A stretch of 63,788 nucleotides of DNA, filler included, from Trichosphaerium sp. ATCC 40318 (GCA_038496445.1; 4 parts of 4 records of this genome joined end to end with filler, not necessarily neighbours in it), one strand, 5' to 3'. Positions 1 through 22,963 are shown, counted from the whole stretch's first letter. Notes: generated from the sequence alone by a model not told the origin. A program made the numbers and translations.

Positions 1-375
1 TTAAAGTTTTTACTTATTCTCGTTCCTTCGCACGTGTTTGTTTTAATTATTTCTTATTTCTATTAGTACAACATGAGAATAAATTAACTTAGTAGTAATT
101 ACAAGCGAGTAAAGTGTCATTAATGGTTTCATAAAGTTACTTAGTAGATTACTGCCAACATCTTTGGAAAAAAAAATACATTTGTGTTGGCAACAGATTT
201 TGATTTTATTTAGTCTATATTTACACCAATGAACTCCAATTACCTTGTACAAGAACCCAAATTGTTTCAGGTGTAAAATGTAGGGATTGAACTTGCTTGG
301 CTGAATACGACAGGGCAGTAGTGCCTATGTCGAGACGTTACATTATGTTACTACCAACTGTTACAACAGTAGTTG

Positions 376-2057
376 TTACTCCCAATCTTTTAAACCAAAT
401 AGTTTAAGTCCAAAATCATCAAGACCAAGTCTATCAACATATGGTCTATATTCAGGAATCTCATCAAGTGTTCTTTTTGCTGTGCGCCTTTCACGAATAT
501 AGCATTCATCTTTTGCAGGAATCATCTTTACAAATTGAATCAATCTCATTTTATTCGAAGTGTTTCCATAGTTAGCGTGTGCTTGTCCTGAATTCCAAAT
601 AACCATCTCTCCTGCACGTAAAGGCACCTATACAAAACGGTAAACACAAAACGGTAAACACAAAGCCAACAAAGAGGAAGCACTGTTAAAAGTACAACAA
701 AATTTCAGAAGGACAATATCTTACTCTTTGCGTGTACTGTTGTATTGGGTCTGATGGCGGTACACGTGTTAATATATTCTTATTGTGTGGTTTAATATGT
801 GTATTTCGCCTGAAAAATCTTGGTTAAGCAAAAACACGTGGTAAAAAAAACTTACCACTTGTTCAAAAACCTTGTTGATCCGGGAACAGTTAGAAATCCA
901 CCAACTTCTTCAGGGCAATCGTCTATCATTTGCAAGTTAATACTTGAATATTCAATTATTAGTTTTCAATGTATGTGCGTACCTAAAGCGATAAGAGCTT
1001 GGTATCTTGCGGTCAAGCCATCTGTAACTTCTTCCATGTACCTTAAAAAAACCGTTATAAATTGGTTCAGAGAATTACTTGGCTATTTCTTACTGCCATG
1101 GATTCAAGTCCCAATGAAGTTGAAGATTAAATTTCCAGGCGGGTCTCTCTTTTTTAGTTTCTGATCCAACAAAATCAAGGTTCTTTGTTCCTCTCATAAC
1201 ACCCCAATAGTCTATAGTTGTCCATAACTTTTTTGTTCCATGAATCTCACAAAAAGTCCGATAAATTGTTTTATTTATTCTATTCTCAAATGCTACCTTA
1301 TGTAATGCAGGTCGTCTGAATAAATACTTACTACCCGAAGGCCAGTTCTTTGTTTCCCATGTACAAGGTTTTGAGCGATCAAGCTTGACTTCCTGATGAG
1401 AACAAGCATCTTCATTGGCTTCTTCAAAAAGTGCTTTTTGAGATTTAACACACTCTTCTTTGTTTAATACTCTTATAACAACAAACCCATACTGCGCTAG
1501 AACAGGCAAGTACTTTTCTGGTTCTGTTGGTTCAAAAGAAAGCATGTAATCGCCTTTGCGAGGGTACTTTGAAAACATCTTCGAGTGATCAGTGTTTTGC
1601 CATATTTCTTGGTATGTTCGTTCTTGATTCTGTTTTTTCGATTGCTGGACATTAAGATTTCCGAAAATAGCCTCACGTGAGTATACAAACTGTTTTTCAT
1701 GCTTTTTACGTATAACACGAGCGTCGTTGCTATGTTTGCGTTGTTGTTTTGACGTTTGAGCTTTTTTCCGTTGTTCTAAGTTGAATTTACATAAAAGTAT
1801 GTCACATTCAAGGTCGTCTTCGTGCTTGAGCGAAATAAGTAGTTTATAGCGATATAAAGCCAAAAAATGTTATACTTACCTCCCAAGTAGCGTGTTCAAC
1901 GTCCCAACCTTCCCACTTTACTAAATACTCTATAGCGCCCTTAAAGGCGTATAAATAGTCAACAAAAAACTATTCTCACTCGTACGGATTTCAACGTTCT
2001 TTTATTTAGTACGCGTTCTGGTATCCAATCGTCAATATCATTTACTGTATTGTCCAT
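376..2057 (-). CDS. Chromodomain + PhyH-like Fe(II)/2OG dioxygenase (multi-exon), copy 1
   Basis: Spliced exons give WIPERVLNKR..IEYLVKWEGWDVEHATWE (chromodomain), then YGFVVI, LHWDLNPW (HxD), GGFLTVPGS and LRAGEMVIWNSGQAHAN..R (PhyH-like). Confidence 0.8.
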
Positions 2058-2752
2058 ACAATTATTGTTTGTTTGGAGGGAAAATAAAGTTAATAATTCA
2101 ATGAAACAAACTTTTTTTTTTCTTTACAGTTTCCTTTTTAAGAGCGTTTTAAAAAACATCTTTCGACTCAGATTAGTCTACACAATTTCCATCCTCTGAA
2201 ACTAGGTATGTTCTTCTAACTGAGTATGAGTCTACTAGTACAGTAGCAACATAGAACAAGGATGTAAAGTACTTCACGTGGCGCAAAGAAAATGGCCGTG
2301 CTTGCTACATTTTGATTGGCACAAGAATCCGACTAGCTTCACTGTCACGATTAGTAGTATCTTTTACATAACACTTGCACATGTTGTCAGCACTCCCCAG
2401 CAGAAACAAATAGAAGAAACCGCCTCTTGCTAGTCTGATTTAATTTTCGAAGTAGTTTTTTCGAACTTTTTCGTTTCGAACTTTCCCAGTTGTATTTTTA
2501 GGCGTCACTGATAGTATCCAACTACAATTCTTTCGCACAGAAAACAAAGGTCTGTTGTAAGTCCTGTAGAAGATGCTGACCACCAGACCCCAATCAAATT
2601 CATACCAGAGATCCTTAAATGAAAAGAAATCAAATGAAGCACAAGATAATAAGCACTTACAACTACAAGAAGATACACCGTAAAATTTAGATGCTCCAAA
2701 TTGAGAAGAATTTCGTCAATTTTCGAGAAACAGTTGGAATACTATTAAGAAA

Positions 2753-3960
2753 ATGTCGTACTCGCAACACCAACTCTTCTTGGTGGCATTTGTAAGCCTA
2801 TTATGCCTTTCAAAGGTATACGCAGATTGTAGCTCGATAGTAGCCCAAGACGGCTCACAATATGATCTATCTGCGCTTATTGGTAAGCTAGTAACCGGAT
2901 ACGGTACTGTAAAGTGTGACGGTTGCGGTGGAGGAGTAAGTGAACAAAAAAGCGAACATTCCACTTACTACTATTGTAGAAAGATAAATACCAATACCGC
3001 GTATCTATATGCAAAGAATCGAACGTTCTTTGCCAAAATGTGCGTCTTTTGGACACATCTTGCTTTCAATCTGTTTGCTGACCACACCATAGCAATACTT
3101 CGCTGGCTGTCAAGCGTGGGGGCAATATAATGCTCAAGGAGCAATGGTACAGTGACATTTCCAAGGAGGTGTTCCGAAATTTCTCGATATGGAATCGAAC
3201 TCTGTTGGATTGTTCTTTCTTCTTCGCTTACTTCATCTAATTGTTTGTTCAGTACTCGATTGGTACAATAGATACAGAACAAGCAATTGGTCTTGATAAC
3301 AATGGAGGTGTTAAACTGAGCTACTCTGGTGGTTATCTACACCGAACTTTTGAACGTAAGCGCATAGAAGATAGTCAATTTTGTATCTAACATGATTTGT
3401 GTGCTAGTGACAATATCTTGCGGAACAGATGGTATTCAGTTTTGGCTTGACACATTTTTTGGCTTCATGCTGATAGTTTTCTTTTAGCATGGACCAATTT
3501 CCAAGTCTTTGATAATGAAGGGCTTCACTATAGAATGACAGCCTCATCTATCCACGCTTGTAAGACCAATAGCGGCGGCAGCCCCACAAGTGGAGGTGGT
3601 GGCGGTGGCGGCAAAGGAGATGATAACAAAAAAAAAAAGGATTAAGTATTGGTTCCATTATGCTTATTGTACTCTTGCTTGGTGTCATTGCATACGTAGC
3701 TGGTACAGTTACTTTCAATATTGTTAGGAAAAATGGAGAGAAAATTCCTCACAAAGTGCGTATCTTGCTCAGTTGTCCAAAAATAAACAAGTGGTATTTA
3801 CTTTTACCAAATAGGACTTCTGGTTCAGCATTCCTGGGCTTTGCAAAGATGGTGCAATGTTTCTAGTCGGACTAGGTATGTTTTTCCGCATTAGCAAGTA
3901 CGAGAATTCGTTCTCACTATTTGTTTAGTCACAAAGAGAGATGAATACTCTGAAGTATAA
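2753..3960 (+). CDS. Type I membrane protein, MRH-domain (CD-M6PR/ATG27-like), multi-exon, copy 1
   Basis: Signal peptide, DGSQYDLSAL, Cys pattern, Gly linker, TM GLSIGSIMLIVLLLGVIAYV, IPH..FW..IPGLCKDG tail ending EYSEV. Confidence 0.7.
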
Positions 3961-4199
3961 TGTTACTTTCTTATAAATTTATCCATTATTTCACTCACCG
4001 TAATAAAACTGTTCTTTAAACTTGCAGCATAAGTAATACATAGCAAAAGGAATCTCGTATATGAACGCCACAGGACTCCATTTATTCAGCATTGCTTAAT
4101 AGTTGGTAGTTCGTTGTTTACCAACACTTGAAAAATGAGATTAAAGGTAAGCAAATCCGCGTAAAGTACAACATTTCGAATAAACAAAAACAAGCTTAG

Positions 4200-7100
4200 A
4201 TTGGACAACGTTGTCAATATAAGGGAGACGCGCTTGGGAGGAAAGACGCTCAGTCTTTGGTGGCTCTAGCGTAGCCACACGAGCGGATTTATTCTACCCA
4301 CGTCAATCCTCTAGCCATGGTTGAGGTTGACCATCCTCCCCAGCGCGATCTGTATGATCAAGGCCATGTTTAAGCCATTGAAACATTAATTTTGGTGCTA
4401 TTAATCTGTCTTCTTTGTTTTTTACAATGTATATTTGATATGCATCTGAGCTCCAATCGCCAATATATTTTATCCATTCATTAGGAACTCCTGCTGCAGC
4501 TGCATGTGTTGCTCCGCCACGCCTGTATGAGTGTCCAGCATATTCTTTAGTATTATTTACCATCTTTGAAACCATTAGTTTGGTCCATTTTACAAATTTA
4601 GAGTATGTTATTTGTGACCACCTTCCGTTGTTCTTGTGTCTAAACAGGGATTTTCCTTGTATGGGTTTGACCTGTTTAATTAGTCTGTTTATCGCTGTTG
4701 TAGGGCATAAAGGGTGACCTTCCATATCCAGAAACGGTATTACGTGTTTTCTCTCACGGAATCGAATTGTTTTTGTTTGTCTAAGTGTAAACCACCAAGT
4801 ATCACCGTCAAACTCTATGTTGGACCTTGATACGTGTCTATCGACACTAAATTCTGCTACTTTACGAGGAACCAAGTTACCTATCCTTAGCATTCCCCAA
4901 AATGCCATTAATGCTGCTGTCCAATAAACCAGATCCTTGTTTTGTCGCAAATCCACTTTTTTTCTTATGTTCAATAACATCACTGCTGTCATAGGTCGTT
5001 TTCTGTCTACTCTATCTCCTACCTTCCTTCTAAGGCCTCTTAACATATCATGATATAATACACAATTTTCTCTTGGGTCAGCATAACCTAATCTTTTCGA
5101 AAGCCATGCCCAATGTGAGAAGTATACGCGGATAGTGTCAGGCTTTACCCCTCTTCCTCTGCTGATTCTTTTGCCCACAATGCTACTACCAGTTGCATGT
5201 GTTGAGAGCTCAAAGGCATCCATTGACTTTGTGGAATATTGAGCTTGAGCAGTGCAATAACTACTGCTTTTATCGCTGACATTCTATTATTGCTTGTACT
5301 TCTGGGATAGGCCTCTCGCAGGATTCTAATACGTTTGTTTTGTACTTCTGTTAAGAATTCTAAATAAATTTATTTAATAAAACGTCCTGTTACATTAAAA
5401 AAGCCTAATTGATTTGCTTTGGTATAAAATTGTTGTGTTTGCAGTCTACTTAAAGCGTCAGCAAGGGTATTTTCTTTTGAGGGAATCCAAGTTGCAGTAA
5501 GCCGGAATCCGAATGCTGCCGACCATTTATGCAGATCGTATATCATCTTCATAGCTCTGGAATTGCGCATTACCAGTCTGTTGACTGATGCAACTACTCC
5601 TGTATTATCCACTAATAAATTGTTGATAAGTTTATTGGCAAATAAGTGTTTCCATTCTTTTATTGCCATCACACCGCATACATCTCCTTAACATTGATAT
5701 GCCATTTTTTTTCTTCTTTTGTAAAGACATGGATAAGCCATGAACCATTTAAAAACGCGCCTGCTGCTATGTTTGAAGCGTCTGTTTGAAACAAACCTTT
5801 TGATAATGGTAACGGACATAGTAAAATTGCCTTACCATTCCATAGGTCCATCATATCATGCCACCACTTTAAGTCTTTTTGCATTGCTGTTGTCTTGTGT
5901 ACCCACTGTTCATTATTGCTATAGTGCCTTAAGCCGTCATATATCCTTCTTAGGTATGTATGTCCCCCATATACAACCTGAGCCGCAAAGTTTAATGTAC
6001 CAGTAAGTTGTTGCCACTTCCTTAACTTCGCTGACTTCTGCTGAAGAAACCAAACCACCAATTTTTTAATTTTTGTCCTTTTACGCTCTGTTAAAGTAAT
6101 CGTACGCTTGGCTGTGTTGATCTCATAGCCCAGAAAGGTGAGGCACTGTGTTGGACCTTGACACTTATCTTTAGACATTTCAAAACCTAAATTTTCTAGT
6201 ATTTTCATTAGCGTTTTCATTGCAACTTTAACTTCTTCTTTAGATCTTCCAATAATCAACCAATCGTCGAAGTAAACAACATGAAAGCTAAAGCCTATTG
6301 ACCGCAAGTACCTAGAGATCATGGCCATCAATCTAATAAATACTTCTGGCGCTCTATTCCATCCAAAGGGAAGCCTACCATCCTTATATAATATTCCTTT
6401 CCATTCAAACGCTATCAAATCATGATGTTTAGGGTTTACTGGTACCATTCGATATGCTGAAAACATATCCTCTTTACCTAACCATAAGACACTATTACTG
6501 TTGTTTCTAATAAAGGTTAAAGCTTCTTTTAGAGCTGTTAATGTAAAACTTTGTGGTGTTTCAGATAGATCATTAACTGAAGTCCCAATAGGAAGATTTA
6601 AACAAACCACTTTACGTATCTTATTTCGGAATTGTCCTTTGTCATCATATTTTGGGATTGCTGCTATTTTGTTACATTTTCGTACCTTGTTAGCCTTGTA
6701 AATCCAGCCTCTAGACAACTCTAAGTTTATATCTTTGCTTACTAGAGTGCTCCATTGATTGCAAGTTTTAGAATTTTCTACTCTTGTTTCTTTAATCACT
6801 GTACCTACTGGAACTAAAGAGATACCTATTGTAATCCACCCCGACAACCACACCCAATCCTTATCTTTACTCATTAATGAGGACCATAATTTAACTTTTT
6901 TAGACATTAACGCTGCTGAGAAAGAGAACGAAAGTTTATTGAGTACAGGCAACGTTAATTTTGATTGTCACCTTCTTTGATTAGGACAGGTATTATGCCA
7001 ATGCCCTTTTATACCACAACTGAAGCACACATGCTTTAGGTAACATCCATTTGGGCGTCTGGAGAAGCGACAGTTATCACTACTCAATGAATTCGCTTGA

Positions 7101-8710
7101 ATACAGGCCAGGTGATCATTGGTGATGTTCCAAGGGTTGTTTCTGCTACCAACTTGAGCATCGATCACTTCTTGCTTGGTGAGTGGAGGGCGTCTAGGTT
7201 GCTGTTGCCGTCTTGGCCTTGGTGGACCTCTAGGTTGATTGTTGGGTTGTTGAACCGGCCCTAGGTACATGTTAAAGTACAACTGAGGAACCAAGTATGG
7301 AGAATCAGATCGTTCCCAGAATTTTCTTACTGCACGATCAAAAATGAGTACCTGCTGCTGCGTATACATTGACAATAGGGCTAGCACTTGGTTGTGGTAT
7401 CTTTGATAGTGCTCTAACATAGTCTTCGAAATAAGACTGTTGGTCATATCTACGTTTGCTTGGCGGAGGATCAAACGAAGACGCATAATCAGATCTGCGT
7501 CGCTGGTTATCGGAATGGCTTTGGAGGGCCTGTGTGAAAGCACTGGTGAGCTATCAAAGACATTAAAAGACTGTACAAACTCTGGAAAATAAACTGGGTT
7601 TTTTATACCAAAACGCGTAATTCCACAAATCAAAGGAGAGTTGGTGAAAGTTTTTCGAAGTGCTGCTGCCTCTTCGGCACTTACCGCAGTGAAATCTGAG
7701 GGCATAATACCCTGAACCAATGGTGTAGGCGTTGTTTTTGCCATCAGTCCATTGTACGGCGCTGTAACATTGTCAAAAGAAAAAGTATCTGTTTTTGGAG
7801 TACCTTGTTGGTTTTGGTACTGATAAGGGTTAGGTAGCCCTGTTCCTGTCGCTGTACCCTGGTCTGGTACCGACTGAATGCCTTGTGTAGGGCGTGGCGG
7901 TGTAGCCGTAACCTCCGTGGTCGCAGAGTTCTGCAAGCCTACACGAGAGGCATAAGAAAGACAAATTTCTCTTGCTTTTTCCAAAATTTGTAATCTTTTT
8001 TGGTTTTTGTCCACGTGCCTTCCGGTTCCTTTGAGGCTTGTTGTTGTTTAAGCTCGTCATTCAGAGCTTGATTTTCTTTCTGAACCACGTCCAGTTGCCG
8101 TTTGAGTACTTCTGTTTGTCGCTGGTAGTCCTCTGTCGCTTGAATTAGGTTCTGTACCAGTTGGAGCTGCTCTGGACTAGAAAGATCCAGATCCTCGCGA
8201 ATTGTAAGGTCTTCGGAGGAAACTCGGCTATTTTAATCCAGTCCGGATACTTTTTCAACTCTACATCTGTAGCGACCTGTTCGTAAATCTCAGTATAGTA
8301 TCTCTGGATTGCGCCATAATCTTATCCCACAACTGTGTCCCTTTAATTTTCTTGTCGGGATCAAGGTTAACGCCAGGAAATTAACAAAATCCCGCTTGGT
8401 TGCCTTCTCTTTTGTTTTTGAAAACTCACGGAATTGTGGAGCTGCATCCACAACAATTTTATACAGTATGGGCCTACGCCTAAATACTTACCAGTATCAC
8501 CAATGTTTTGATTGCTACTCGCCATTGTTGTTGTTGTTGCCTATTGTGTCCTTCGATATTGACAGTCTTGTTCAGTCAACCAAACGCTTGAAATGTTCCA
8601 CATCTTCATTCATTAATTGTCTTGTGGCTACTGCTGAATTCCCAGTAGTATTAGATAATGCAATTATAGGATACCTTTTATTAAATTATGTACTCCGCCA
8701 GAAAGGAGAC
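4200..8710 (-). mobile_element. DIRS-like YR retrotransposon, copy 1 (several 1-nt indels)
   Basis: Mirror of 11450-15960; YR 4303-~5283, RT/RH 5370-6952, gag 6968-~8525, each broken by frameshifts relative to copy 2. Ends approximate. Confidence 0.9.
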
Positions 8711-9458
8711 ATGTTGGAGTAATTGTAACGTACTTTCAAGGTAGTTGATGTCTTAAACATTTACATGTCAATGTCTGAACTCAGACTTACCAATTTTGGT
8801 AAGCAAGTAGTACGAGGTACAACAATGCGTCATGTTTAAATACTACGCAGTAAGCGAAACATTTGAGAGTATTGGAATGTATACTATCGCTGACGTAAGC
8901 AACGTAAGATGTCTCTACAAGAAAGCCGCCAGTGTTGTTAAAAAAAATTGTTCGGTTTTATTTTTCTCTAGCAATATTGCTTTGTTTTATCCCTTCTGGT
9001 AGAAATAAGTGTACCAATATTATCCGAGTATAATCGTCAATAGTTGTAACTTGATATACACTGGCACGAATGTTGTGTGAAAACCAGATGAACAAAAGTG
9101 CCTATTTTGGATGGTTCTAAAAAAACGTGTTAAATTACCTACCATTGAAGCAAGTTTGTTACCTTTCTTTAATGCGGAACATTCGCTATCAGCATCTAGT
9201 GTTACAGTGTTTGTGTCATGAAGCAGTTTAAAGGGAATGCAGCAACCAAACAACAGTTTTGTTTGATAAAACGCGAACAGTTGAAATCAAGAAAAGAAAA
9301 CATGTTCAACTTCGATGTGCGTATGCTCGTCAAAAAACCCTTTACAATTACCATCGTTGCGCTAGTAATAGGTCGGATAATACAATCTAGCGGTCTGTAT
9401 TGACTTAGCTCACACGTCAATTTTATTCGCTATTCCAAAACAAAAAGCTCTTCGCGGT

Positions 9459-11184
9459 ATGCGAGGTAGACACTTGTCCATAAACGTAAAGTTTGCAGTG
9501 ATTACGCTAGTGTTTTACTTCGGACTAACAGAATCGGCTTGCCTTCAACCCAATGGTGGTTTAGAACACTGGTATACCTTCGATAATGGTATAGGAGCGA
9601 ACAATTTTAGAGGCAGTTACGGTAAACTAAACACTACAACAAAGATTTCCAGTATTGAGGTTAGTACCTTCTTTCTTTATATCAAAAGATTACATATTGA
9701 CTTGTTTTTCCGCTGTAAAACAGAGAGGGGTTGTAGGAAATAGTCTTTGGCTATCAAATGGGACGTTCGAGATTAATGTTCAAGATCCTGTACCACACAT
9801 TCTAGGTAACCTAAGCAAAAGAAACGTGACCGTGCTCCAAAAAAAAAAAATGGAGTCACGTTTTTATTTTATTTTTGTTGTTTTCTTCGTCCTTTTTTTT
9901 TCCGATCCCCGATTCGGTAACACTTTCAAAGGTGATTTCGTAGTTGAGATGTGGACAAAAGTAGACGTTTTAAGACAACCGGAGCACGTTTTATTCTCTC
10001 AGTATGATGAATCGCCTGTACCTATTGGCTATATTGTTGGGTTGAACGACGACGGTACAATGAATATTCATTTGTCAAATTGTAAGTACAAATTACTTAA
10101 AGGGGTTAACTTTACTCCGCATTTTCCCCTAACTTTACATTAGCTGCATCATATACAGCTGTATCAAATGTATCCATAGCCGATAATAAATGGCACCATA
10201 TAGCGCTAGTAATGTATAGGTACGCTTTTCAAGAAAAAAAGATCTGTTCGTTGACATTTTACAAAAAAAGTGATGGAAGAATACCAAATCTCAGTGTTGA
10301 TGGTATAGAAAACAGTCTCATTGGCGCACAGCGAATAAATTGTTGTACACCGTTCCCTCAATCACCTTTTCGACTTGAAGATGGAAGATACGATGAGGTT
10401 TGTAATCACGTGAAAGAGAAAAAAATTAAGGTTATTTTAGGTATCTCTTTACAGAAATGCTCTCACAAACGTTGATGTGTTGCAGCTCTACGAAGCAGGT
10501 AATATAATTTATAAAAAATCACGTGATATTTTTCCTTGATTTAACATTGTAAAGGAAGCGATGGAAAGTGTAGCACTTCTGGTATACCAAACATAGGGAC
10601 AAAAGAATACTTAGAAAGTAAAGGCGCTGAATGTGTCCCACCAGCAAATTGCAGCTTTAACTCATCAACTACGCCTGTTGTCATTGATGATGTTGTTTTA
10701 GACGCCAGAAACTATACTATAATTGTTCAAGGTAACTAAGATCCTTATATTGATCAAAGCTCACGATTAACATTAGGAAACTTGACGTTTTTGCGATCAA
10801 TTGTAGTTGTTAACGAGCATACGCACATCGAAGTTGAACAGTGTCCTCTTTTTCTTGATTCAACTGTTCGCGTTTTATCAAACAAAACTGTTGTTTGGTT
10901 TGCTGCATTCCCTTTAAACTGCTTCATGGACACAAACACTGTAACACTAGATGCTGATAGCGAATGTTCCGCATTAAAGAAAGGTAACAAACTTGCTTCA
11001 ATTGGTAGGTAATTTAACACGTTTTTTTAGAACCATCCAAAATAGGCACTTTTGTTCATCTGGGTTTTCACACAACATGTCGTGCCAGTGTATTATCAAG
11101 TTACAAACTATTGACGATTATACTCGGGATAATATTGGTACACTTATTTCTACCAGAGGGATGAAAACAAAGCAATATTGCTAG
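9459..11184 (+). CDS. Secreted LamG/concanavalin-like domain protein (multi-exon)
   Basis: Signal peptide, LEHWYTFD, FVVEMWTK, ADNKWHHIALV, DE-V-SLYRNALT motifs across short introns; 3' end uncertain. Confidence 0.6.
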
Positions 11185-11629
11185 AGAAAAATAAAACCGA
11201 ACAATTTTTTTTACAACACTGGCGGCTTTCTTGTAGAGACTATCTTACGTTGCTTACGTCAGCGATAGTATACATTCCAATACTCTCAAATGTGTCGCTT
11301 ACTGCGTAGTATTTAAACATGACGCATTGTTGTACCTCGTACTACTTGCTTACCAAAATTGGTAATTCTGAGTTCAGACATTGACATGTAAATGTTTAAG
11401 ACATCAACTACCTTGAAAGTACGTTACAAATTACTCCAACATGTCTCCTTTCTGGCGGAGTACATAATTTAATAAAAGGTATCCTATAATTGCATTATCT
11501 AATACTATCTGGGAATTCAGCAGTAGCCACAAGACAATTAATGAATGAAGATGTGGAACATTTCAAGCGTTTGGTTGGACTGAACAAGACTGTCAATATC
11601 GAAGGACACAATAGGCAACAACAACAACA

Positions 11630-13192
11630 ATGGCGAGTAGCAATCAAAACATTGGTGATACTGGTAAGTATTTAGGCGTAGGCCCATACTGGTATAAAAT
11701 TGTTGTGGATGCAGCTCCACAATTCCGTGAGTTTTCAAAAACAAAAGAGAAGGCAACCAAGCGGGATTTTGTTAATTTCCTGGCGGTTAACCTTGATCCC
11801 GACAAGAAAATTAAAGGGACACAGTTGTGGGATAAGATTATGGCGCAATCCAGAGATACTATACTGGAGATTTACGAACAGGTCGCTACAGATGTAGAGT
11901 TGAAAAAGTATCCGGACTGGATTAAAATAGCCGGAGTTTCCTCCGAAGACCTTACAATTCGCGAGGATCTGGATCTTTCTAGTCCAGAGCAGCTCCAACT
12001 GGTACAGAACCTAATTCAAGCGACAGAGGACTACCAGCGACAAACAGAAGTACTCAAACGGCAACTGGACGTGGTTCAGAAAGAAAATCAAGCTCTGAAT
12101 GACGAGCTTAAACAACAACAAGCCTCAAAGGAACCGGAAGGCACGTGGACAAAAACCAAAAAAGATTTACAAATTTTGGAAAAAGCAAGAGAAATTTGTC
12201 TTTCTTATGCCTCTCGTGTAGGCTTGCAGAACTCTGCGACCACGGAGGTTACGGCTACACCGCCACGCCCTACACAAGGCATTCAGTCGGTACCAGACCA
12301 GGGTACAGCGACAGGAACAGGGCTACCTAACCCTTATCAGTACCAAAACCAACAAGGTACTCCAAAAACAGATACTTTTTCTTTTGACAATGTTACAGCG
12401 CCGTACAATGGACTGATGGCAAAAACAACGCCTACACCATTGGTTCAGGGTATTATGCCCTCAGATTTCACTGCGGTAAGTGCCGAAGAGGCAGCAGCAC
12501 TTCGAAAAACTTTCACCAACTCTCCTTTGATTTGTGGAATTACGCGTTTTGGTATAAAAAACCCAGTTTATTTTCCAGAGTTTGTACAGTCTTTTAATGT
12601 CTTTGATAGCTCACCAGTGCTTTCACACAGGCCCTCCAAAGCCATTCCGATAACCAGCGACGCAGATCTGATTATGCGTCTTCGTTTGATCCTCCGCCAA
12701 GCAAACGTAGATATGACCAACAGTCTTATTTCGAAGACTATGTTAGAGCACTATCAAAGATACCACAACCAAGTGCTAGCCCTATTGTCAATGTATACGC
12801 AGCAGCAGGTACTCATTTTTGATCGTGCAGTAAGAAAATTCTGGGAACGATCTGATTCTCCATACTTGGTTCCTCAGTTGTACTTTAACATGTACCTAGG
12901 GCCGGTTCAACAACCCAACAATCAACCTAGAGGTCCACCAAGGCCAAGACGGCAACAGCAACCTAGACGCCCTCCACTCACCAAGCAAGAAGTGATCGAT
13001 GCTCAAGTTGGTAGCAGAAACAACCCTTGGAACATCACCAATGATCACCTGGCCTGTATTCAAGCGAATTCATTGAGTAGTGATAACTGTCGCTTCTCCA
13101 GACGCCCAAATGGATGTTACCTAAAGCATGTGTGCTTCAGTTGTGGTATAAAAGGGCATTGGCATAATACCTGTCCTAATCAAAGAAGGTGA
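11630..13192 (+). CDS. gag: Gag-like protein with coiled coil and C-terminal CCCH/CCHC zinc fingers
   Basis: 520 aa ending C..C..C..HVCFSCGIKGHWHNTC, directly upstream of RT. Confidence 0.85.
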   Translation: MASSNQNIGDTGKYLGVGPYWYKIVVDAAPQFREFSKTKEKATKRDFVNFLAVNLDPDKKIKGTQLWDKIMAQSRDTILEIYEQVATDVELKKYPDWIKIAGVSSEDLTIREDLDLSSPEQLQLVQNLIQATEDYQRQTEVLKRQLDVVQKENQALNDELKQQQASKEPEGTWTKTKKDLQILEKAREICLSYASRVGLQNSATTEVTATPPRPTQGIQSVPDQGTATGTGLPNPYQYQNQQGTPKTDTFSFDNVTAPYNGLMAKTTPTPLVQGIMPSDFTAVSAEEAAALRKTFTNSPLICGITRFGIKNPVYFPEFVQSFNVFDSSPVLSHRPSKAIPITSDADLIMRLRLILRQANVDMTNSLISKTMLEHYQRYHNQVLALLSMYTQQQVLIFDRAVRKFWERSDSPYLVPQLYFNMYLGPVQQPNNQPRGPPRPRRQQQPRRPPLTKQEVIDAQVGSRNNPWNITNDHLACIQANSLSSDNCRFSRRPNGCYLKHVCFSCGIKGHWHNTCPNQRR

Positions 13193-13207
13193 CAATCAAA
13201 ATTAACG

Positions 13208-14791
13208 TTGCCTGTACTCAATAAACTTTCGTTCTCTTTCTCAGCAGCGTTAATGTCTAAAAAAGTTAAATTATGGTCCTCATTAATGAGTAAAGATAAG
13301 GATTGGGTGTGGTTGTCGGGGTGGATTACAATAGGTATCTCTTTAGTTCCAGTAGGTACAGTGATTAAAGAAACAAGAGTAGAAAATTCTAAAACTTGCA
13401 ATCAATGGAGCACTCTAGTAAGCAAAGATATAAACTTAGAGTTGTCTAGAGGCTGGATTTACAAGGCTAACAAGGTACGAAAATGTAACAAAATAGCAGC
13501 AATCCCAAAATATGATGACAAAGGACAATTCCGAAATAAGATACGTAAAGTGGTTTGTTTAAATCTTCCTATTGGGACTTCAGTTAATGATCTATCTGAA
13601 ACACCACAAAGTTTTACATTAACAGCTCTAAAAGAAGCTTTAACCTTTATTAGAAACAACAGTAATAGTGTCTTATGGTTAGGTAAAGAGGATATGTTTT
13701 CAGCATATCGAATGGTACCAGTAAACCCTAAACATCATGATTTGATAGCGTTTGAATGGAAAGGAATATTATATAAGGATGGTAGGCTTCCCTTTGGATG
13801 GAATAGAGCGCCAGAAGTATTTATTAGATTGATGGCCATGATCTCTAGGTACTTGCGGTCAATAGGCTTTAGCTTTCATGTTGTTTACTTCGACGATTGG
13901 TTGATTATTGGAAGATCTAAAGAAGAAGTTAAAGTTGCAATGAAAACGCTAATGAAAATACTAGAAAATTTAGGTTTTGAAATGTCTAAAGATAAGTGTC
14001 AAGGTCCAACACAGTGCCTCACCTTTCTGGGCTATGAGATCAACACAGCCAAGCGTACGATTACTTTAACAGAGCGTAAAAGGACAAAAATTAAAAAATT
14101 GGTGGTTTGGTTTCTTCAGCAGAAGTCAGCGAAGTTAAGGAAGTGGCAACAACTTACTGGTACATTAAACTTTGCGGCTCAGGTTGTATATGGGGGACAT
14201 ACATACCTAAGAAGGATATATGACGGCTTAAGGCACTATAGCAATAATGAACAGTGGGTACACAAGACAACAGCAATGCAAAAAGACTTAAAGTGGTGGC
14301 ATGATATGATGGACCTATGGAATGGTAAGGCAATTTTACTATGTCCGTTACCATTATCAAAAGGTTTGTTTCAAACAGACGCTTCAAACATAGCAGCAGG
14401 CGCGTTTTTAAATGGTTCATGGCTTATCCATGTCTTTACAAAAGAAGAAAAAAAATGGCATATCAATGTTAAGGAGATGTATGCGGTGTGGATGGCAATA
14501 AAAGAATGGAAACACTTATTTGCCAATAAACTTATCAACAATTTATTAGTGGATAATACAGGAGTAGTTGCATCAGTCAACAGACTGGTAATGCGCAATT
14601 CCAGAGCTATGAAGATGATATACGATCTGCATAAATGGTCGGCAGCATTCGGATTCCGGCTTACTGCAACTTGGATTCCCTCAAAAGAAAATACCCTTGC
14701 TGACGCTTTAAGTAGACTGCAAACACAACAATTTTATACCAAAGCAAATCAATTAGGCTTTTTTAATGTAACAGGACGTTTTATTAAATAA
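13208..14791 (+). CDS. pol: Reverse transcriptase / RNase H (DIRS-type)
   Basis: KEDMFSAYRMVPV, LPFGW, VYFDD, FLGYEI; RNase H TDAS, HINVKEMYAV, VDNT, WIPSKENTLADALSR. Confidence 0.95.
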   Translation: MPVLNKLSFSFSAALMSKKVKLWSSLMSKDKDWVWLSGWITIGISLVPVGTVIKETRVENSKTCNQWSTLVSKDINLELSRGWIYKANKVRKCNKIAAIPKYDDKGQFRNKIRKVVCLNLPIGTSVNDLSETPQSFTLTALKEALTFIRNNSNSVLWLGKEDMFSAYRMVPVNPKHHDLIAFEWKGILYKDGRLPFGWNRAPEVFIRLMAMISRYLRSIGFSFHVVYFDDWLIIGRSKEEVKVAMKTLMKILENLGFEMSKDKCQGPTQCLTFLGYEINTAKRTITLTERKRTKIKKLVVWFLQQKSAKLRKWQQLTGTLNFAAQVVYGGHTYLRRIYDGLRHYSNNEQWVHKTTAMQKDLKWWHDMMDLWNGKAILLCPLPLSKGLFQTDASNIAAGAFLNGSWLIHVFTKEEKKWHINVKEMYAVWMAIKEWKHLFANKLINNLLVDNTGVVASVNRLVMRNSRAMKMIYDLHKWSAAFGFRLTATWIPSKENTLADALSRLQTQQFYTKANQLGFFNVTGRFIK

Positions 14792-14878
14792 ATTTATTTA
14801 GAATTCTTAACAGAAGTACAAAACAAACGTATTAGAATCCTGCGAGAGGCCTATCCCAGAAGTACAAGCAATAATAGA

Positions 14879-15859
14879 ATGTCAGCGATAAAAGCAGTAG
14901 TTATTGCACTGCTCAAGCTCAATATTCCACAAAGTCAATGGATGCCTTTGAGCTCTCAACACATGCAACTGGTAGTAGCATTGTGGGCAAAAGAATCAGC
15001 AGAGGAAGAGGGGTTAAAGCCTGACACTATCCGCGTATACTTCTCACATTGGGCATGGCTTTCGAAAAGATTAGGTTATGCTGACCCAAGAGAAAATTGT
15101 GTATTATATCATGATATGTTAAGAGGCCTTAGAAGGAAGGTAGGAGATAGAGTAGACAGAAAACGACCTATGACAGCAGTGATGTTATTGAACATAAGAA
15201 AAAAAGTGGATTTGCGACAAAACAAGGATCTGGTTTATTGGACAGCAGCATTAATGGCATTTTGGGGAATGCTAAGGATAGGTAACTTGGTTCCTCGTAA
15301 AGTAGCAGAATTTAGTGTCGATAGACACGTATCAAGGTCCAACATAGAGTTTGACGGTGATACTTGGTGGTTTACACTTAGACAAACAAAAACAATTCGA
15401 TTCCGTGAGAGAAAACACGTAATACCGTTTCTGGATATGGAAGGTCACCCTTTATGCCCTACAACAGCGATAAACAGACTAATTAAACAGGTCAAACCCA
15501 TACAAGGAAAATCCCTGTTTAGACACAAGAACAACGGAAGGTGGTCACAAATAACATACTCTAAATTTGTAAAATGGACCAAACTAATGGTTTCAAAGAT
15601 GGTAAATAATACTAAAGAATATGCTGGACACTCATACAGGCGTGGCGGAGCAACACATGCAGCTGCAGCAGGAGTTCCTAATGAATGGATAAAATATATT
15701 GGCGATTGGAGCTCAGATGCATATCAAATATACATTGTAAAAAACAAAGAAGACAGATTAATAGCACCAAAATTAATGTTTCAATGGCTTAAACATGGCC
15801 TTGATCATACAGATCGCGCTGGGGAGGATGGTCAACCTCAACCATGGCTAGAGGATTGA
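14879..15859 (+). CDS. Tyrosine recombinase of the DIRS-like element
   Basis: FWGMLRIGNL (R), QTKT (K), GHSYRRGGAT (HxxR), GDWSSDAYQIY (W...Y). Confidence 0.95.
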   Translation: MSAIKAVVIALLKLNIPQSQWMPLSSQHMQLVVALWAKESAEEEGLKPDTIRVYFSHWAWLSKRLGYADPRENCVLYHDMLRGLRRKVGDRVDRKRPMTAVMLLNIRKKVDLRQNKDLVYWTAALMAFWGMLRIGNLVPRKVAEFSVDRHVSRSNIEFDGDTWWFTLRQTKTIRFRERKHVIPFLDMEGHPLCPTTAINRLIKQVKPIQGKSLFRHKNNGRWSQITYSKFVKWTKLMVSKMVNNTKEYAGHSYRRGGATHAAAAGVPNEWIKYIGDWSSDAYQIYIVKNKEDRLIAPKLMFQWLKHGLDHTDRAGEDGQPQPWLED

Positions 15860-16201
15860 CGTGGGTAGAATAAATCCGCTCGTGTGGCTACGCTAGAGCC
15901 ACCAAAGACTGAGCGTCTTTCCTCCCAAGCGCGTCTCCCTTATATTGACAACGTTGTCCAATCTAAGCTTGTTTTTGTTTATTCGAAATGTTGTACTTTA
16001 CGCGGATTTGCTTACCTTTAATCTCATTTTTCAAGTGTTGGTAAACAACGAACTACCAACTATTAAGCAATGCTGAATAAATGGAGTCCTGTGGCGTTCA
16101 TATACGAGATTCCTTTTGCTATGTATTACTTATGCTGCAAGTTTAAAGAACAGTTTTATTACGGTGAGTGAAATAATGGATAAATTTATAAGAAAGTAAC
16201 A

Positions 16202-17409
16202 TTATACTTCAGAGTATTCATCTCTCTTTGTGACTAAACAAATAGTGAGAACGAATTCTCGTACTTGCTAATGCGGAAAAACATACCTAGTCCGACTAGA
16301 AACATTGCACCATCTTTGCAAAGCCCAGGAATGCTGAACCAGAAGTCCTATTTGGTAAAAGTAAATACCACTTGTTTATTTTTGGACAACTGAGCAAGAT
16401 ACGCACTTTGTGAGGAATTTTCTCTCCATTTTTCCTAACAATATTGAAAGTAACTGTACCAGCTACGTATGCAATGACACCAAGCAAGAGTACAATAAGC
16501 ATAATGGAACCAATACTTAATCCTTTTTTTTTTTTGTTATCATCTCCTTTGCCGCCACCGCCACCACCTCCACTTGTGGGGCTGCCGCCGCTATTGGTCT
16601 TACAAGCGTGGATAGATGAGGCTGTCATTCTATAGTGAAGCCCTTCATTATCAAAGACTTGGAAATTGGTCCATGCTAAAAGAAAACTATCAGCATGAAG
16701 CCAAAAAATGTGTCAAGCCAAAACTGAATACCATCTGTTCCGCAAGATATTGTCACTAGCACACAAATCATGTTAGATACAAAATTGACTATCTTCTATG
16801 CGCTTACGTTCAAAAGTTCGTGTAGATAACCACCAGAGTAGCTCAGTTTAACACCTCCATTGTTATCAAGACCAATTGCTTGTTCTGTATCTATTGTACC
16901 AATCGAGTACTGAACAAACAATTAGATGAAGTAAGCGAAGAAGAAAGAACAATCCAACAGAGTTCGATTCCATATCGAGAAATTTCGGAACACCTCCTTG
17001 GAAATGTCACTGTACCATTGCTCCTTGAGCATTATATTGCCCCCACGCTTGACAGCCAGCGAAGTATTGCTATGGTGTGGTCAGCAAACAGATTGAAAGC
17101 AAGATGTGTCCAAAAGACGCACATTTTGGCAAAGAACGTTCGATTCTTTGCATATAGATACGCGGTATTGGTATTTATCTTTCTACAATAGTAGTAAGTG
17201 GAATGTTCGCTTTTTTGTTCACTTACTCCTCCACCGCAACCGTCACACTTTACAGTACCGTATCCGGTTACTAGCTTACCAATAAGCGCAGATAGATCAT
17301 ATTGTGAGCCGTCTTGGGCTACTATCGAGCTACAATCTGCGTATACCTTTGAAAGGCATAATAGGCTTACAAATGCCACCAAGAAGAGTTGGTGTTGCGA
17401 GTACGACAT
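16202..17409 (-). CDS. MRH-domain (CD-M6PR/ATG27-like) membrane protein, copy 2
   Basis: Mirror of 2753-3960. Confidence 0.7.
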
Positions 17410-18104
17410 TTTCTTAATAGTATTCCAACTGTTTCTCGAAAATTGACGAAATTCTTCTCAATTTGGAGCATCTAAATTTTACGGTGTATCTTCTTGTAGT
17501 TGTAAGTGCTTATTATCTTGTGCTTCATTTGATTTCTTTTCATTTAAGGATCTCTGGTATGAATTTGATTGGGGTCTGGTGGTCAGCATCTTCTACAGGA
17601 CTTACAACAGACCTTTGTTTTCTGTGCGAAAGAATTGTAGTTGGATACTATCAGTGACGCCTAAAAATACAACTGGGAAAGTTCGAAACGAAAAAGTTCG
17701 AAAAAACTACTTCGAAAATTAAATCAGACTAGCAAGAGGCGGTTTCTTCTATTTGTTTCTGCTGGGGAGTGCTGACAACATGTGCAAGTGTTATGTAAAA
17801 GATACTACTAATCGTGACAGTGAAGCTAGTCGGATTCTTGTGCCAATCAAAATGTAGCAAGCACGGCCATTTTCTTTGCGCCACGTGAAGTACTTTACAT
17901 CCTTGTTCTATGTTGCTACTGTACTAGTAGACTCATACTCAGTTAGAAGAACATACCTAGTTTCAGAGGATGGAAATTGTGTAGACTAATCTGAGTCGAA
18001 AGATGTTTTTTAAAACGCTCTTAAAAAGGAAACTGTAAAGAAAAAAAAAAGTTTGTTTCATTGAATTATTAACTTTATTTTCCCTCCAAACAAACAATAA
18101 TTGT

Positions 18105-19785
18105 ATGGACAATACAGTAAATGATATTGACGATTGGATACCAGAACGCGTACTAAATAAAAGAACGTTGAAATCCGTACGAGTGAGAATAGTTTTTTGT
18201 TGACTATTTATACGCCTTTAAGGGCGCTATAGAGTATTTAGTAAAGTGGGAAGGTTGGGACGTTGAACACGCTACTTGGGAGGTAAGTATAACATTTTTT
18301 GGCTTTATATCGCTATAAACTACTTATTTCGCTCAAGCACGAAGACGACCTTGAATGTGACATACTTTTATGTAAATTCAACTTAGAACAACGGAAAAAA
18401 GCTCAAACGTCAAAACAACAACGCAAACATAGCAACGACGCTCGTGTTATACGTAAAAAGCATGAAAAACAGTTTGTATACTCACGTGAGGCTATTTTCG
18501 GAAATCTTAATGTCCAGCAATCGAAAAAACAGAATCAAGAACGAACATACCAAGAAATATGGCAAAACATTGATCACTCGAAGATGTTTTCAAAGTACCC
18601 TCGCAAAGGCGATTACATGCTTTCTTTTGAACCAACAGAACCAGAAAAGTACTTGCCTGTTCTAGCACAGTATGGGTTTGTAGTTATAAGAGTATTAAAC
18701 AAAGAAGAGTGTGTTAAATCTCAAAAAGCACTTTTTGAAGAAGCCAATGAAGATGCTTGTTCTCATCAGGAAGTCAAGCTTGATCGCTCAAAACCTTGTA
18801 CATGGGAAACAAAGAACTGGCCTTCGGGTAGTAAGTATTTATTCAGACGACCTGCATTACATAAGGTAGCATTTGAGAATAGAATAAAAAAACAATTTAT
18901 CGGACTTTTTGTGAGATTCATGGAACAAAAAAGTTATGGACTACTATAGACTATTGGGGTGTTATGAGAGGAACAAAGAACCTTGATTTTGTTGGATCAG
19001 AAACTAAAAAAGAGAGACCCGCCTGGAAATTTAATCTTCAACTTCATTGGGACTTGAATCCATGGCAGTAAGAAATAGCCAAGTAATTCTCTGAACCAAT
19101 TTAAAACGGTCTTTTTAAGGTACATGGAAGAAGTTACAGATGGCTTGACCGCAAGATACCAAGCTCTTATCGCTTTAGGTACGCACATACATTGAAAACT
19201 AATAATTGAATATTCAAGTATTAACTTGCAAATGATAGACGATTGCCCTGAAGAAGTTGGTGGATTTCTAACTGTTCCCGGATCAACAAGGTTTTTGAAC
19301 AAGTGGTAAGTTTTTTTTACCACGTGTTTTTGCTTAACCAAGATTTTTCAGGCGAAATACACATATTAAACCACACAATAAGAATATATTAACACGTGTA
19401 CCGCCATCAGACCCAATACAACAGTACACGCAAAGAGTAAGATATTGTCCTTCTGAAATTTTGTTGTACTTTTAACAGTGCTTCCTCTTTGTTGGCTTTG
19501 TGTTTACCGTTTTGTGTTTACCGTTTTGTATAGGTGCCTTTACGTGCAGGAGAGATGGTTATTTGGAATTCAGGACAAGCACACGCTAACTATGGAAACA
19601 CTTCGAATAAAATGAGATTGATTCAATTTGTAAAGATGATTCCTGCAAAAGATGAATGCTATATTCGTGAAAGGCGCACAGCAAAAAGAACACTTGATGA
19701 GATTCCTGAATATAGACCATATGTTGATAGACTTGGTCTTGATGATTTTGGACTTAAACTATTTGGTTTAAAAGATTGGGAGTAA
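18105..19785 (+). CDS. Chromodomain + PhyH-like dioxygenase, copy 2
   Basis: Mirror of 376-2057; 1-nt loss near 18890 in an A-run. Confidence 0.78.
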
Positions 19786-20067
19786 CAACTACTGTTGTAA
19801 CAGTTGGTAGTAACATAATGTAACGTCTCGACATAGGCACTACTGCCCTGTCGTATTCAGCCAAGCAAGTTCAATCCCTACATTTTACACCTGAAACAAT
19901 TTGGGTTCTTGTACAAGGTAATTGGAGTTCATTGGTGTAAATATAGACTAAATAAAATCAAAATCTGTTGCCAACACAAATGTATTTTTTTTCCAAAGAT
20001 GTTGGCAGTAATCTACTAAGTAACTTTATGAAACCATTAATGACACTTTACTCGCTTGTAATTACTA

Positions 20068-22963
20068 CTAAGTTAATTTATTCTCATGTTGTACTAATAG
20101 AAATAAGAAATAATTAAAACAAACACGTGCGAAGGAACGAGAATAAGTAAAAACTTTAACGTACACTGTTTCGGTGGCATGAAGCAAGTGCCGTTCTTGG
20201 TCAACTTCTTCACCAGCTACATATTCACTATTGTTATATGGCACCCATGACCAAATGGCGAATGATACGCCTACAGCCACAGTAACAAAAAGTATCATCA
20301 AACTAGTAAAACTCCATGCAGGGAATCCAAGAATTATACTGTCAAGTTCACCAGGTGTTCTGAAAAACGACAATGATAGTATAAACAGGAGGAACCATAG
20401 TAACCAATACATGTTATACTGTGCAGGATCCTTATCATCCTCTAAAACCCAAATAATTAGCCAAACAAAACAAGACATCCAGTAAACAAAGGTATTACTT
20501 TGTTTGGCTTTTTTTTTCTACATACCAAACATAGTGTCAACATCAATACTTAACGTAAGAGGACCTTTAGGGCTTTTAAGCAATCTATCGTTTATAATTT
20601 GAACTGCTAGCAGCACAATTATATTCGCAGTAAATCCATATACACCGGGATCAATACCAACTACAATCAAGAAATCAAACTAAGTTATTGTAAACTTCTA
20701 TTACTTACGTAAATTATCACCACCAGTAGCGATTATCATAATAACAGTGATTACAATACCTACTATACAACCGCAGAATAAACTTATCCAACGTATCCAA
20801 CCCAAGTACAACCCCTACATAAAAGAATAAATAAGCACTGAAGGAAAAAAAACTGAAGTTGACTATAATTGTTTAACACGAAATCAGGCTGATCTGATGC
20901 TTCTTCAGTTGTTTTTCAGTATAGGTTACTCGTTTTTACGTACAAGTATAAAGCTTGGAGTTGCTTGGATGAGTATGTTACCAACAAAGAGCAACATGAC
21001 ATATAAGTTAAATTCAATGAAAACTCCAATGATAATTCCGACAACAACCAATAAAACAGTCACAAATTTTGAAGCAATGAGAAGATGAGATTCCTTAGAC
21101 GACGGCCATAATGGTTTAATAATATCTATAATTATTATAGAAGTTGCAGACATTAAAAGAGAATCAGTAGTGCTCATTCTACTCGAGTGTTAATGTTCCA
21201 TTCACAAAAACATAAATAAAATTGATAAATCTTTTTACGTACATTGCTGCTACTGAGCTTGCCAATAATAACGCTAAAGATAATAAGAAATATACTCCAA
21301 TAATTAGCAAGTACATGCGACAAAGTTAGAGAAACCTCCTTTAAGCAAAAAGTCCCTAGAGGTGAAGAGATAAGTTACAGAAATAACGATTTGTGTTACT
21401 GAATTGATATGTAAGCTCACCCAATGACAATTGAAAGAATCTGGTCAGATTCATCATCACTCAAATCAGGATGACTGACACGGCCCAGGATACCAATAGT
21501 TATACTGAACAAATAGTCAAAAACCTTCGTACAACCGAATAAAGTCGAAGTCAATCCGACAATCATGAAAACCGAAATAAACTGTAAAGTTTCTTTACCA
21601 CAATTAATTGTTGAAATATTTTGTTCAAATTAAAAGAAAGCACGTGCCTGGGTAAGTAAGCAAATCCTTGTACAAACACAAGCATCCAAATTCCAAGTTT
21701 AAGTTTCTTCTCGCTTTGTACTGCAAATATTCTTTGAAGCATATGAGGGTAGATCATTGAACTAAGCAAACATTAAACAATAACTATGTAGGTATTACTG
21801 GTACCTAACGTTTAAGATAATGAAAGAGTACCAAGCAAGTTTAGCTGTAGGTCCAGGGACAGCAAGAATATGCTCTGGTAATAGCTTTGCTTGCTTAATT
21901 AAACCTTGAACATGTAAATGAACCAAATAATGGCTTAATAACTTTTTTCTCACCTCCTTCTTGAACAACCCCAATCACAATAACGGATATAAACGCAAAC
22001 ATTATCATGCTACCCTAGGATACTTATGAGCTTCTATCAAAGTTATCATAAAGTGCTATAAAAGTCACTTAAGTGACAGTACTTGAACAATATCAGTCCA
22101 TGCAACAGAACGCATTCCACCCTTAACCAAAACTTAGTATTAAGAATTAAAACAACAAGAGCACCAGCATCTCGTATATCAGCATAACTACACCAAAGCC
22201 GATAGCTCCCCAAATGCCATCCACAGTGTTATTACTTAGTCCCTTTCAACCGTTGAGATTTGGATACTTCATAGAAGAGTACAGAGTCATTACGAACCTC
22301 CGTGGATTGACCTATCGCTTTAAACTGTCCAATGATGTAGCATATATTAGGTACAAGTAAACACAGAGCTATAAGCGTTCTCAGCAACCGTGAACCGAAT
22401 CTACAGTAATGAGGAGAAGAGTCTTGTTGACTGCAAGTACCTATCACGTATAAACTCAGCCGGTGAAATGTACTTCCTTGCCTACCACCACAATCAAATT
22501 CACGCCCAAAACAAAGCCACGACATACTTTTGCTATACGATACAGCCTAGGAGCAATAGCTAAAAGCGGACCAGCTGTCCATAGAACTGATCTAAAGCAA
22601 AAAGAAATATGTTATCAAGTAATAATTATCGACTATCGGAATTTTCTTGTTGTTTTTTTTAAAGTACCCAGCCATCCAAACTAATGCTAGATAAACCTCT
22701 TCTATAAGCGTCTCCAGGTACACCGACAATAGTAAAACCAGAGTAAAATCTTTTTGAAACAAAAAAATCACGTGTTTAGATGTAGCGGCTGTACCACGTG
22801 ATAAAAATTGCTTACGAGGCGAATGCCGTGCAAAAAAATACAAAAAAGCTCATTCGTCCTCCAACGATGTAATGTTCACCTCAAGGGTACTCTTAGTAAG
22901 CGTAGAGACAGTTGGAATAAATTTATAGCGACATTTACCTAGAGAGTTGTTTCGCTTCATAAA
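20068..22963 (-). CDS. Sodium:solute symporter (SSF) family transporter, many introns, 5' end in gap
   Basis: GGMRSVAWTDIVQ, YPHMLQRIFAVQSEK, MSTTDSLLMSATSII motifs; many TM segments. Confidence 0.8.

Follow-up and report, generated by a model that had tools for sequence, protein, structure and literature searches.

Gammaretroviruses and epsilonretroviruses are known to read through an in-frame stop between gag and pol, and the same strategy has been suggested for some long terminal repeat (LTR) retrotransposons. In the gammaretrovirus murine leukemia virus (MLV), the ratio of Gag to Gag-Pol is determined by a single in-frame stop between the two genes, UAG-G, together with a compact pseudoknot that starts about 8 nt further on (PMC3542737). 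Two further kinds of leaky stop have been defined in plant and animal RNA viruses: the type I signal of tobamoviruses (UAG-CAR-YYA), in which CAR-YYA is active with UGA too, and the type II signal of alphaviruses and tobraviruses, UGA-CGG or UGA-CUA, which is often accompanied by a stem-loop some 8 nt past it (PMC3542737). The Ty1/copia element Tca2 of Candida albicans combines an in-frame stop with a predicted pseudoknot, and a reporter assay detected no read-through (PMC7175516). Here we describe a tyrosine recombinase (YR) retrotransposon of the Ngaro type from Trichosphaerium sp. ATCC 40318 (GCA_038496445.1), in which gag, reverse transcriptase (RT)/RNase H (RH), and YR lie in one frame divided by single stops, and in which the first of these stops, a UGA at the end of gag, is probably read through. 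The window analyzed, to which all coordinates given without a contig name refer, is a stretch of 63,788 nt, filler included, in which four parts from four records of the genome, not necessarily neighbors, are joined end to end. No mention of an in-frame gag stop or of read-through in YR retrotransposons was found in the literature searched, outside of which lies the original Ngaro paper (Goodwin and Poulter 2004), so an earlier notice is possible.

In the window, the three genes are on the plus strand, and both the list of open reading frames (ORFs) and the sequence place all their starts in one frame (coordinate mod 3 = 2). The gag gene ends in AGG-TGA-CAA-TCA-AAA and continues in frame into RT, while RT/RH ends in a TAA, behind which 29 codons remain open up to the first ATG of YR. 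A first-pass annotation of this DNA had described precisely this arrangement and had likened CAA-TCA to the CARYYA leaky context; the sequence agrees on both counts, the hexanucleotide matching the CAR-YYA definition of type I signals (PMC3542737). The arrangement at the gag stop is not peculiar to this family. The genome contains, in addition to the window's lineage, at least six other divergent lineages (named here by their contigs), whose gag and RT are 27-44% and 49-62% identical, respectively, to those of the window. In all seven, RT follows gag in the same frame with one TGA between them, 4-8 codons past the zinc knuckle. The stop reads AGG-TGA-CAA-TCA in the window lineage, ACT-TGA-CAA-TTA in C341, ACC-TGA-CAA-TTA in C396, ACT-TGA-CTG-CCG in C38, ACC-TGA-CTG-CCA in C26, ACC-TGA-AAT-GTA in C368, and AAA-TGA-AAA-CTT in C30. 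What persists of the combined signature of frame and TGA-CAA-TCA is the frame and the TGA, kept by these seven lineages and at least 14 outside the genome, whereas the exact context does not persist, CAA-YYA being found in three lineages. Overall, three lineages of the genome have a type I match in the six bases past the stop, and at least seven relatives have a type II match; both signals are matched here by sequence alone.

The outside relatives come from marine and other metagenomes. Those recovered by protein search, with RT 29-34% identical, have UGA-CUA in frame in L038/L039, L040, L041-L043, and L045, and three more elements on two further metagenomic contigs share the gag-RT frame according to their gene coordinates only. 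Scanning metagenome contigs with a profile yielded 80 loci in 51 clusters, 27 of which were not classifiable for the upstream frame. In 10 of the 51 clusters, an upstream ORF at least 150 codons long is divided from RT by one stop only, in the same frame. Eight of these stops are TGA, one is TAG-GGG, and one is TAA; the triplets following the TGA are CTC, CTA, CTC, CCA, CTA, CGT, CGG, and ATC, so that seven of the eight begin with C. The codons beyond the gag stop carry a signal of their own. In all lineages, 100 codons past it are open, and the first Met occurs anywhere from codon 5 to beyond codon 100, none being conserved. The conserved N-terminus of pol (DKDW.WL ... NS.TC ... WIY) starts about 30 codons past the stop. 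In three lineage pairs, the ratio of nonsynonymous to synonymous change (pN/pS) is 0.31, 0.45, and 0.34 over the 40 codons after the stop, compared with 0.20-0.33 over the 40 codons before it. By these ratios, the codons right after the gag stop are under purifying selection.

Because the gag stop is conserved far beyond chance in its presence, identity, position, and context, as is the coding signal downstream, programmed UGA read-through is the best explanation for this junction, and on these grounds the proposal of the first-pass annotation for the gag stop is supported. We consider it likely that the window element belongs to a young Ngaro-type family in which the gag UGA is partly read through to give Gag-RT/RH, its leakiness being predicted from the surrounding sequence. 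Most ribosomes on the full-length RNA would terminate at the gag UGA, and a minority would decode it and stay in frame to produce a Gag-RT/RNase H fusion. UGA-CAA-UCA would supply the leakiness, possibly assisted by a hairpin 9 nt downstream, and the fraction of ribosomes reading through would set the Gag:Pol ratio, as in gammaretroviruses. Since the element has no protease, the fusion probably remains uncleaved. YR would be reached via upstream translation or another non-canonical route, for which read-through of the UAA is one candidate only. The likeness to MLV lies in the single in-frame gag-pol stop with structure close downstream. However, MLV combines UAG-G with a compact pseudoknot, whereas the window element has UGA-CAA-UCA (UGA-CUA in relatives) and at most a simple hairpin and, unlike MLV, lacks a protease to free Pol.

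Several observations weigh against this interpretation. An in-frame stop alone is no proof of read-through, as the Tca2 precedent illustrates; Tca2 is an LTR element with an integrase, unlike the window element, and its negative reporter result serves as a caution. The contexts TGA-AAT in C368 and TGA-AAA in C30 correspond to no known leaky context. In 14 of the 51 metagenomic clusters, a long upstream ORF is in a different frame, and the arrangement therefore holds for a subclade and is not universal. The window hairpin loses its significance when folded on 124 nt and is absent from C341 and C396, the nearest lineages with CAA-YYA, and a stem common to C38, C26, and C368 has one compensatory pair only. 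On 76 nt, the hairpin has a z-score of -3.39, with none of 200 shuffles folding as well, and stems starting 6-16 nt past the stop are predicted in 8 of 11 lineages, with mostly weak z-scores and negligible covariation. By these folding predictions, a stimulatory RNA structure after the gag stop is possible.

Ngaro elements are defined by split direct repeats in the arrangement A1-[ORFs]-B1A2B2 and by the gene order gag, RT/RH, YR (PMC8547959, PMC3266345). Their ORFs have previously been reported to be non-overlapping, with YR in the same or a different frame (PMC3266345; PMC3783388). DIRS1-like elements are characterized by inverted terminal repeats, an internal complementary region, a methyltransferase, and often long ORF overlaps (PMC3266345). 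In the insertions of the window family on C77, C398, and C119, a second A comes after B1, and a second B about 100 nt after that, giving A1-[ORFs]-B1-A2-B2. The element's own ends are direct repeats. Inverted terminal repeats or an internal complementary region of the DIRS1 kind were not found, the only inverted repeats being the arms of a contig-wide palindrome discussed below. Consistent with the Ngaro superfamily, the recombinase shows a Phage_integrase match, the HxxR box HSYRRGGAT, and a C-terminal Tyr motif, with no rve domain, and RT and RNase H share one ORF in whose 532 codons nothing else was detected. The methyltransferase that marks the DIRS1-like and PAT-like superfamilies is lacking; among the relatives, a Dam-type methyltransferase domain was seen only in P0015, one of the most distant matches. 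On account of the split direct repeats and the lack of a methyltransferase, the element is of the Ngaro type (order DIRS) and not of the DIRS1 type, a placement made by architecture and not by an RT tree with named references. It is alike to the Ngaro types 1-4 of Cafeteria burkhardae and to the fungal Ngaro clades in gene order, split direct repeats, and absence of a methyltransferase, protease, and DDE integrase. With DIRS-1 of Dictyostelium and other DIRS1-like elements it shares the order, the YR, and a related RT/RH, whereas their inverted terminal repeats, internal complementary region, methyltransferase, and long ORF overlaps do not occur in the window element. It is thus a new member of a known superfamily. 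The first-pass annotation had called it DIRS-like and had taken DIRS1 as its yardstick. Since the element is of the Ngaro type, for which non-overlapping ORFs are already on record, the overlapping ORFs of DIRS1 are the wrong standard of comparison, and the oddity of the layout had been overstated.

At the second junction, the evidence bears first on where YR begins. A signature, F-[LIV]-[DE] ... KR..ILR.AYP.ST, is conserved in the YR frame of all lineages of the genome and of L049, the closest outside relative (YR 48% identical). For this N-terminal segment, three lineage pairs give pN/pS values of 0.15-0.30, and the pair C341-C357 gives 0.86. Judged by conservation, the 29 codons after the TAA are clearly coding. 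The first ATG of YR in the window is not conserved: the residue aligned with it is other than Met in most other lineages of the genome, being Arg in C341, C357, and C30, and also in L049. Upstream of the AYP motif, an ATG is missing from most lineages. Because the 29 preceding codons are conserved and lack an ATG, translation of YR would start upstream of the ATG at 14879. The distance between the RT/RH stop and the YR N-terminus is no more than about 15 codons in any lineage. YR follows in the same frame behind a single TAA in the window family, four insertions of which retain both features, and also in L049 (an apparent RT/RH tail, TAA, YR). It is in the -1 frame relative to RT/RH in C26 and C38 (large contigs with two agreeing copies) and in C30. 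One-base offsets in C341, C357, and C396 coincide with runs of T9, T6, and T5, respectively, and were given no weight because of these runs and the frequent 1-nt indels in the assembly. Among 57 metagenomic loci (not deduplicated), YR is in the -1 frame in 41, in the +1 frame in 12, in frame with one stop in three, and fused without a stop in one. In particular, a lone in-frame TGA precedes YR in L052/L053 and in L057, and L055 has a continuous RT-YR ORF; since in-frame and fused relatives exist, fusion of RT/RH to YR is viable in the clade.

Where YR is in the -1 frame, the RT/RH stop, which may be TAG, TGA, or TAA, falls across a conserved Leu codon (YUA or YUG) at the YR N-terminus. Upstream of that stop, all 20 lineages checked have an open -1 frame of 55 nt or more, mostly 94-106 nt. 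Canonical -1 frameshifting was considered for these lineages and rejected, as most of the overlaps contain no X_XXY_YYZ heptamer in the right frame. Separately, about 20 divergent -1 lineages among the metagenomic relatives (L078-L126) were seen to have a -1 frame free of stops as far upstream as the ADxLSR motif of RNase H, and no conserved ATG. In the window, the RT/RH-YR stop has a downstream coding signature, while its context, AAA-UAA-AUU, matches no known read-through motif, and the frame relation takes the values 0, -1, and +1 among the lineages. UAA followed by A is generally viewed as a strong terminator. The first-pass annotation had extended read-through to this stop as well. With a TAA outside any known leaky context and a frame relation that is not conserved among relatives, this part of its proposal does not carry over from the gag stop; from the sequence, RT/RH-YR read-through is possible, not established.

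Different accounts of the two junctions have to be weighed together. That there is no bypass at all, either because the copies are dead or because pol is expressed from an internal promoter or internal ribosome entry site, as argued for Tca2, we regard as highly improbable. Apart from the Tca2 precedent, it can appeal to the window copy itself, which is without A2-B2 and has a shortened gag. However, the same frame, the same TGA, and the same stop position are retained in different hosts and in lineages with as little as 27-44% identity in gag, and stops acquired by random inactivation would not fall on one site again and again. Purifying selection on the codons immediately past the stop and the lack of a conserved Met there also speak against it. 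An intron hiding either stop was likewise rejected: there is no conserved GT donor, the sole GT...AG candidates spanning the gag stop, 56 or 59 nt in length, are frame-breaking, and the residues past the stop are conserved. Splicing has been weighed in another form too, with YR made from a subgenomic mRNA in which a donor, G/GTAAGT at 11663/11664 (11 codons into gag), is joined to a T-rich tract and TAG at 14801/14802, in phase, so that gag would lend its ATG to YR. The phase of the donor was predicted in advance, and a consensus-like donor was found exactly there. The T-rich tract and TAG at the first YR codons are present in every lineage of the genome and in 11 of the 12 lineages compared (not in L045), with the encoded residues varying on both sides, and the host has many short introns. 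Nevertheless, this route is very unlikely: no equivalent donor is found in the intact C26 lineage, in C341, or in C368; host donors read GTACGT, not GTAAGT; and relatives with TGA or TAA as the RT stop lack the AG. The TAG is more readily accounted for by the most frequent -1 layout, in which it is the stop codon of RT/RH. Nor is the deletion derivative on C119, described below, bounded by GT-AG.

The remaining accounts concern how ribosomes get past the RT/RH stop. If both stops were read through, as the full model of the first-pass annotation has it, one RNA would yield Gag, Gag-RT/RH, and, rarely, a Gag-RT/RH-YR polyprotein. The retention of TAA and frame in four family insertions, the conserved, ATG-free codons after the TAA with a mostly non-Met residue aligned to the window ATG, and the existence of L049 with one frame and a single TAA, of L052/L053 and L057 with an in-frame TGA, and of the fused L055 all fit such a model. 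It is at odds with AAA-UAA-AUU, which fits no known read-through context, and with the changing frame, which is -1 in C26, C38, and C30 and 0 in only 4 of the 57 metagenomic loci, and we view it as unlikely. Similarly low weight is due to the separate production of YR after termination of RT/RH, by reinitiation or internal initiation at the ATG at 14879 or at a near-cognate codon within 14792-14878. Such a mechanism is frame-independent and would fit the variable frames; it would also accommodate the constant proximity of the RT/RH stop to the YR N-terminus, the overlap of that stop with the conserved Leu codon in the -1 layout, and the ATGs that occur five codons past the stop in C26 and directly past it in L045. 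Yet no ATG is conserved, a start at 14879 would lose the conserved KR..ILR.AYP segment, and a stop-start overlap of the UAAUG type is absent from most lineages. We hold as distinctly unlikely, in turn, a more far-reaching possibility: that the recombinase lacks a start codon of its own clade-wide and that a previously undescribed, frame-tolerant coupling ties its translation to RT/RH termination, which would here take the form of a second read-through, resulting in a protease-less Gag-RT/RH-YR polyprotein.

The features of the window element are collected in the table below. Among the element proteins, Pfam profiles detect RVT_1 (1.6e-17), a weak RNase H, and Phage_integrase (1.3e-5, under the Pfam cut-off), and the motifs CCHC, YFDD, TDAS, and HSYRRGGAT were located in the translation. 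The gag product matches no Pfam family, its lone sub-threshold match being at chance level, and Pfam returns no rve (DDE integrase), protease, or methyltransferase anywhere in the element. The ORF list contains no additional ORF between YR and B1. Within repeat A, a leader at 11545-11590 (ATGAaTGAA ... CATTTCAGGCGTTTGAAC ... GGAC) is conserved at the nucleotide level across lineages, including the 5' ends of the C341, C396, and C368 copies, far above the adjacent gag, and it probably acts in cis in transcription, priming, or recombination.

Table. Coordinates of the Ngaro-type element and associated features in the window
Feature	Position	Strand	Remarks
Ngaro-type YR retrotransposon copy	11537..15966	+	Bounds from homology with the C77, C398, and C119 insertions (start 11535-11538, end 15966)
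Split direct repeat A1	11535..11652	+	Recurs as A2 after B1 in the C77, C398, and C119 copies; gag ATG inside A1
gag-like ORF, 520 aa	11630..13192	+	CCHC zinc knuckle 13133-13174; last codons AGG-TGA
In-frame gag TGA, then CAA-TCA (-AAA)	13190..13198	+	Matches CAR-YYA type I read-through context
Possible stimulatory hairpin, 12-bp stem	13202..13253	+	13202-13214 paired with 13242-13253; begins 9 nt past the stop
RT/RNase H frame, 532 codons, without conserved start codon	13193..14791	+	YFDD at 13886, TDAS at 14375; no methyltransferase domain
TAA closing RT/RH	14789..14791	+	Next base A; context AAA-UAA-AUU
29 in-frame codons without ATG (..ILREAYPRSTSNNR)	14792..14878	+	Encode conserved N-terminal part of YR (F-L-.., KR..ILR.AYP.ST)
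YR ORF from first ATG	14879..15859	+	HSYRRGGAT at 15629; DAYQIY downstream
Split direct repeat B1, 102 nt	15865..15966	+	Present again, as B2, about 210 bp downstream in the copies on C77, C398, and C119
Mirror image of the element, left palindrome arm	4196..8618	-	Same stops; 1-nt deletions shift gag, RT/RH, and YR

Contig C452, which carries the element, is palindromic, host flanks included: approximately 1-9302 is the reverse complement of 10842-20159, with the center at about 10070 and a unique core at 9303-10841. Between the two arms there are 35 differences, most of them 1-nt deletions in the left arm whose density rises toward the center; several of these disrupt gag, one disrupts RT/RH (equivalent of 14490), and one disrupts YR (equivalent of 15014). 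The palindrome is probably a fold-back chimeric long-read artifact and not a true inverted duplication. Being the mirror arm of a palindrome and bearing frame-shifting deletions, the left copy is neither an independent nor an intact insertion, and the earlier statement that both copies keep the layout is not confirmed, with gag, RT/RH, and YR all frameshifted there. Contig C566 is a separate assembly of 12202-22963 with 99.75% identity and extra indels, and the assembly therefore carries indel noise. Independent insertions of the family are those on C398, C77, and C119, in which both stop junctions are identical to those of the window or differ by 1 nt. The family copies are 99.5-99.7% alike, so that these insertions attest to the youth of the family only. 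Relative to C77 and C398, gag of the window copy is 186 bp (62 codons) shorter at about 11930, and the copy terminates at the end of B1, without the A2-B2 present in other copies.

Two further loci show rearranged forms. At C119:177070-179194 (L017 7070-9194) is a non-autonomous deletion derivative, in which A1 is fused directly to the equivalent of window position 14267; the remainder of gag and most of RT/RH are gone, and YR and B1-A2-B2 are retained. At C368:27640-28750 (L030 approximately 7640-8750), an insert of about 1.1 kb, with repeated GGTATATACC-like palindromic units, occupies the RT/RH-YR junction and could represent a small nested element, either mobile or satellite.

The host genome assembly comprises 70.3 Mb in 642 contigs. 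As read from its genes, the host uses the standard genetic code, because four intronless HSP70 genes are without in-frame stops and no other TGA or TAA interrupts any element ORF; a reassigned code, tried as an explanation for the stops, was rejected on the same grounds. An HSP70-family gene at C33:233300-235650 (L044) has introns of about 40-90 nt, nearly all with a GTACGT donor and not GTAAGT. The small subunit (SSU) rRNA is about 2,650 nt long, against 1,831 model positions, with no group I intron called. Between SSU and the large subunit (LSU), no 5.8S match was obtained at the gathering threshold. Ribosomal DNA units lie within a few kilobases of many contig ends (C481, C410, C75, C6, C34, C592, and others; L031).

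To our knowledge, protein expression and its balance in YR retrotransposons are essentially unstudied, and the literature searched is silent on them. The points of interest are the clade-wide UGA-C contexts and the AUG-less recombinase. A UGA that is conserved clade-wide with textbook leaky contexts provides a concrete, testable answer to the question of Gag versus Pol in these elements. The comparison also exposes a second problem, that of an AUG-less recombinase placed on the RT/RH stop in variable frames, which is testable with these sequences. In practical terms, annotation pipelines calling three separate ORFs would misplace the starts of both pol and YR. More generally, read-through in the style of retroviruses would extend to a retroelement order that has neither protease nor integrase.

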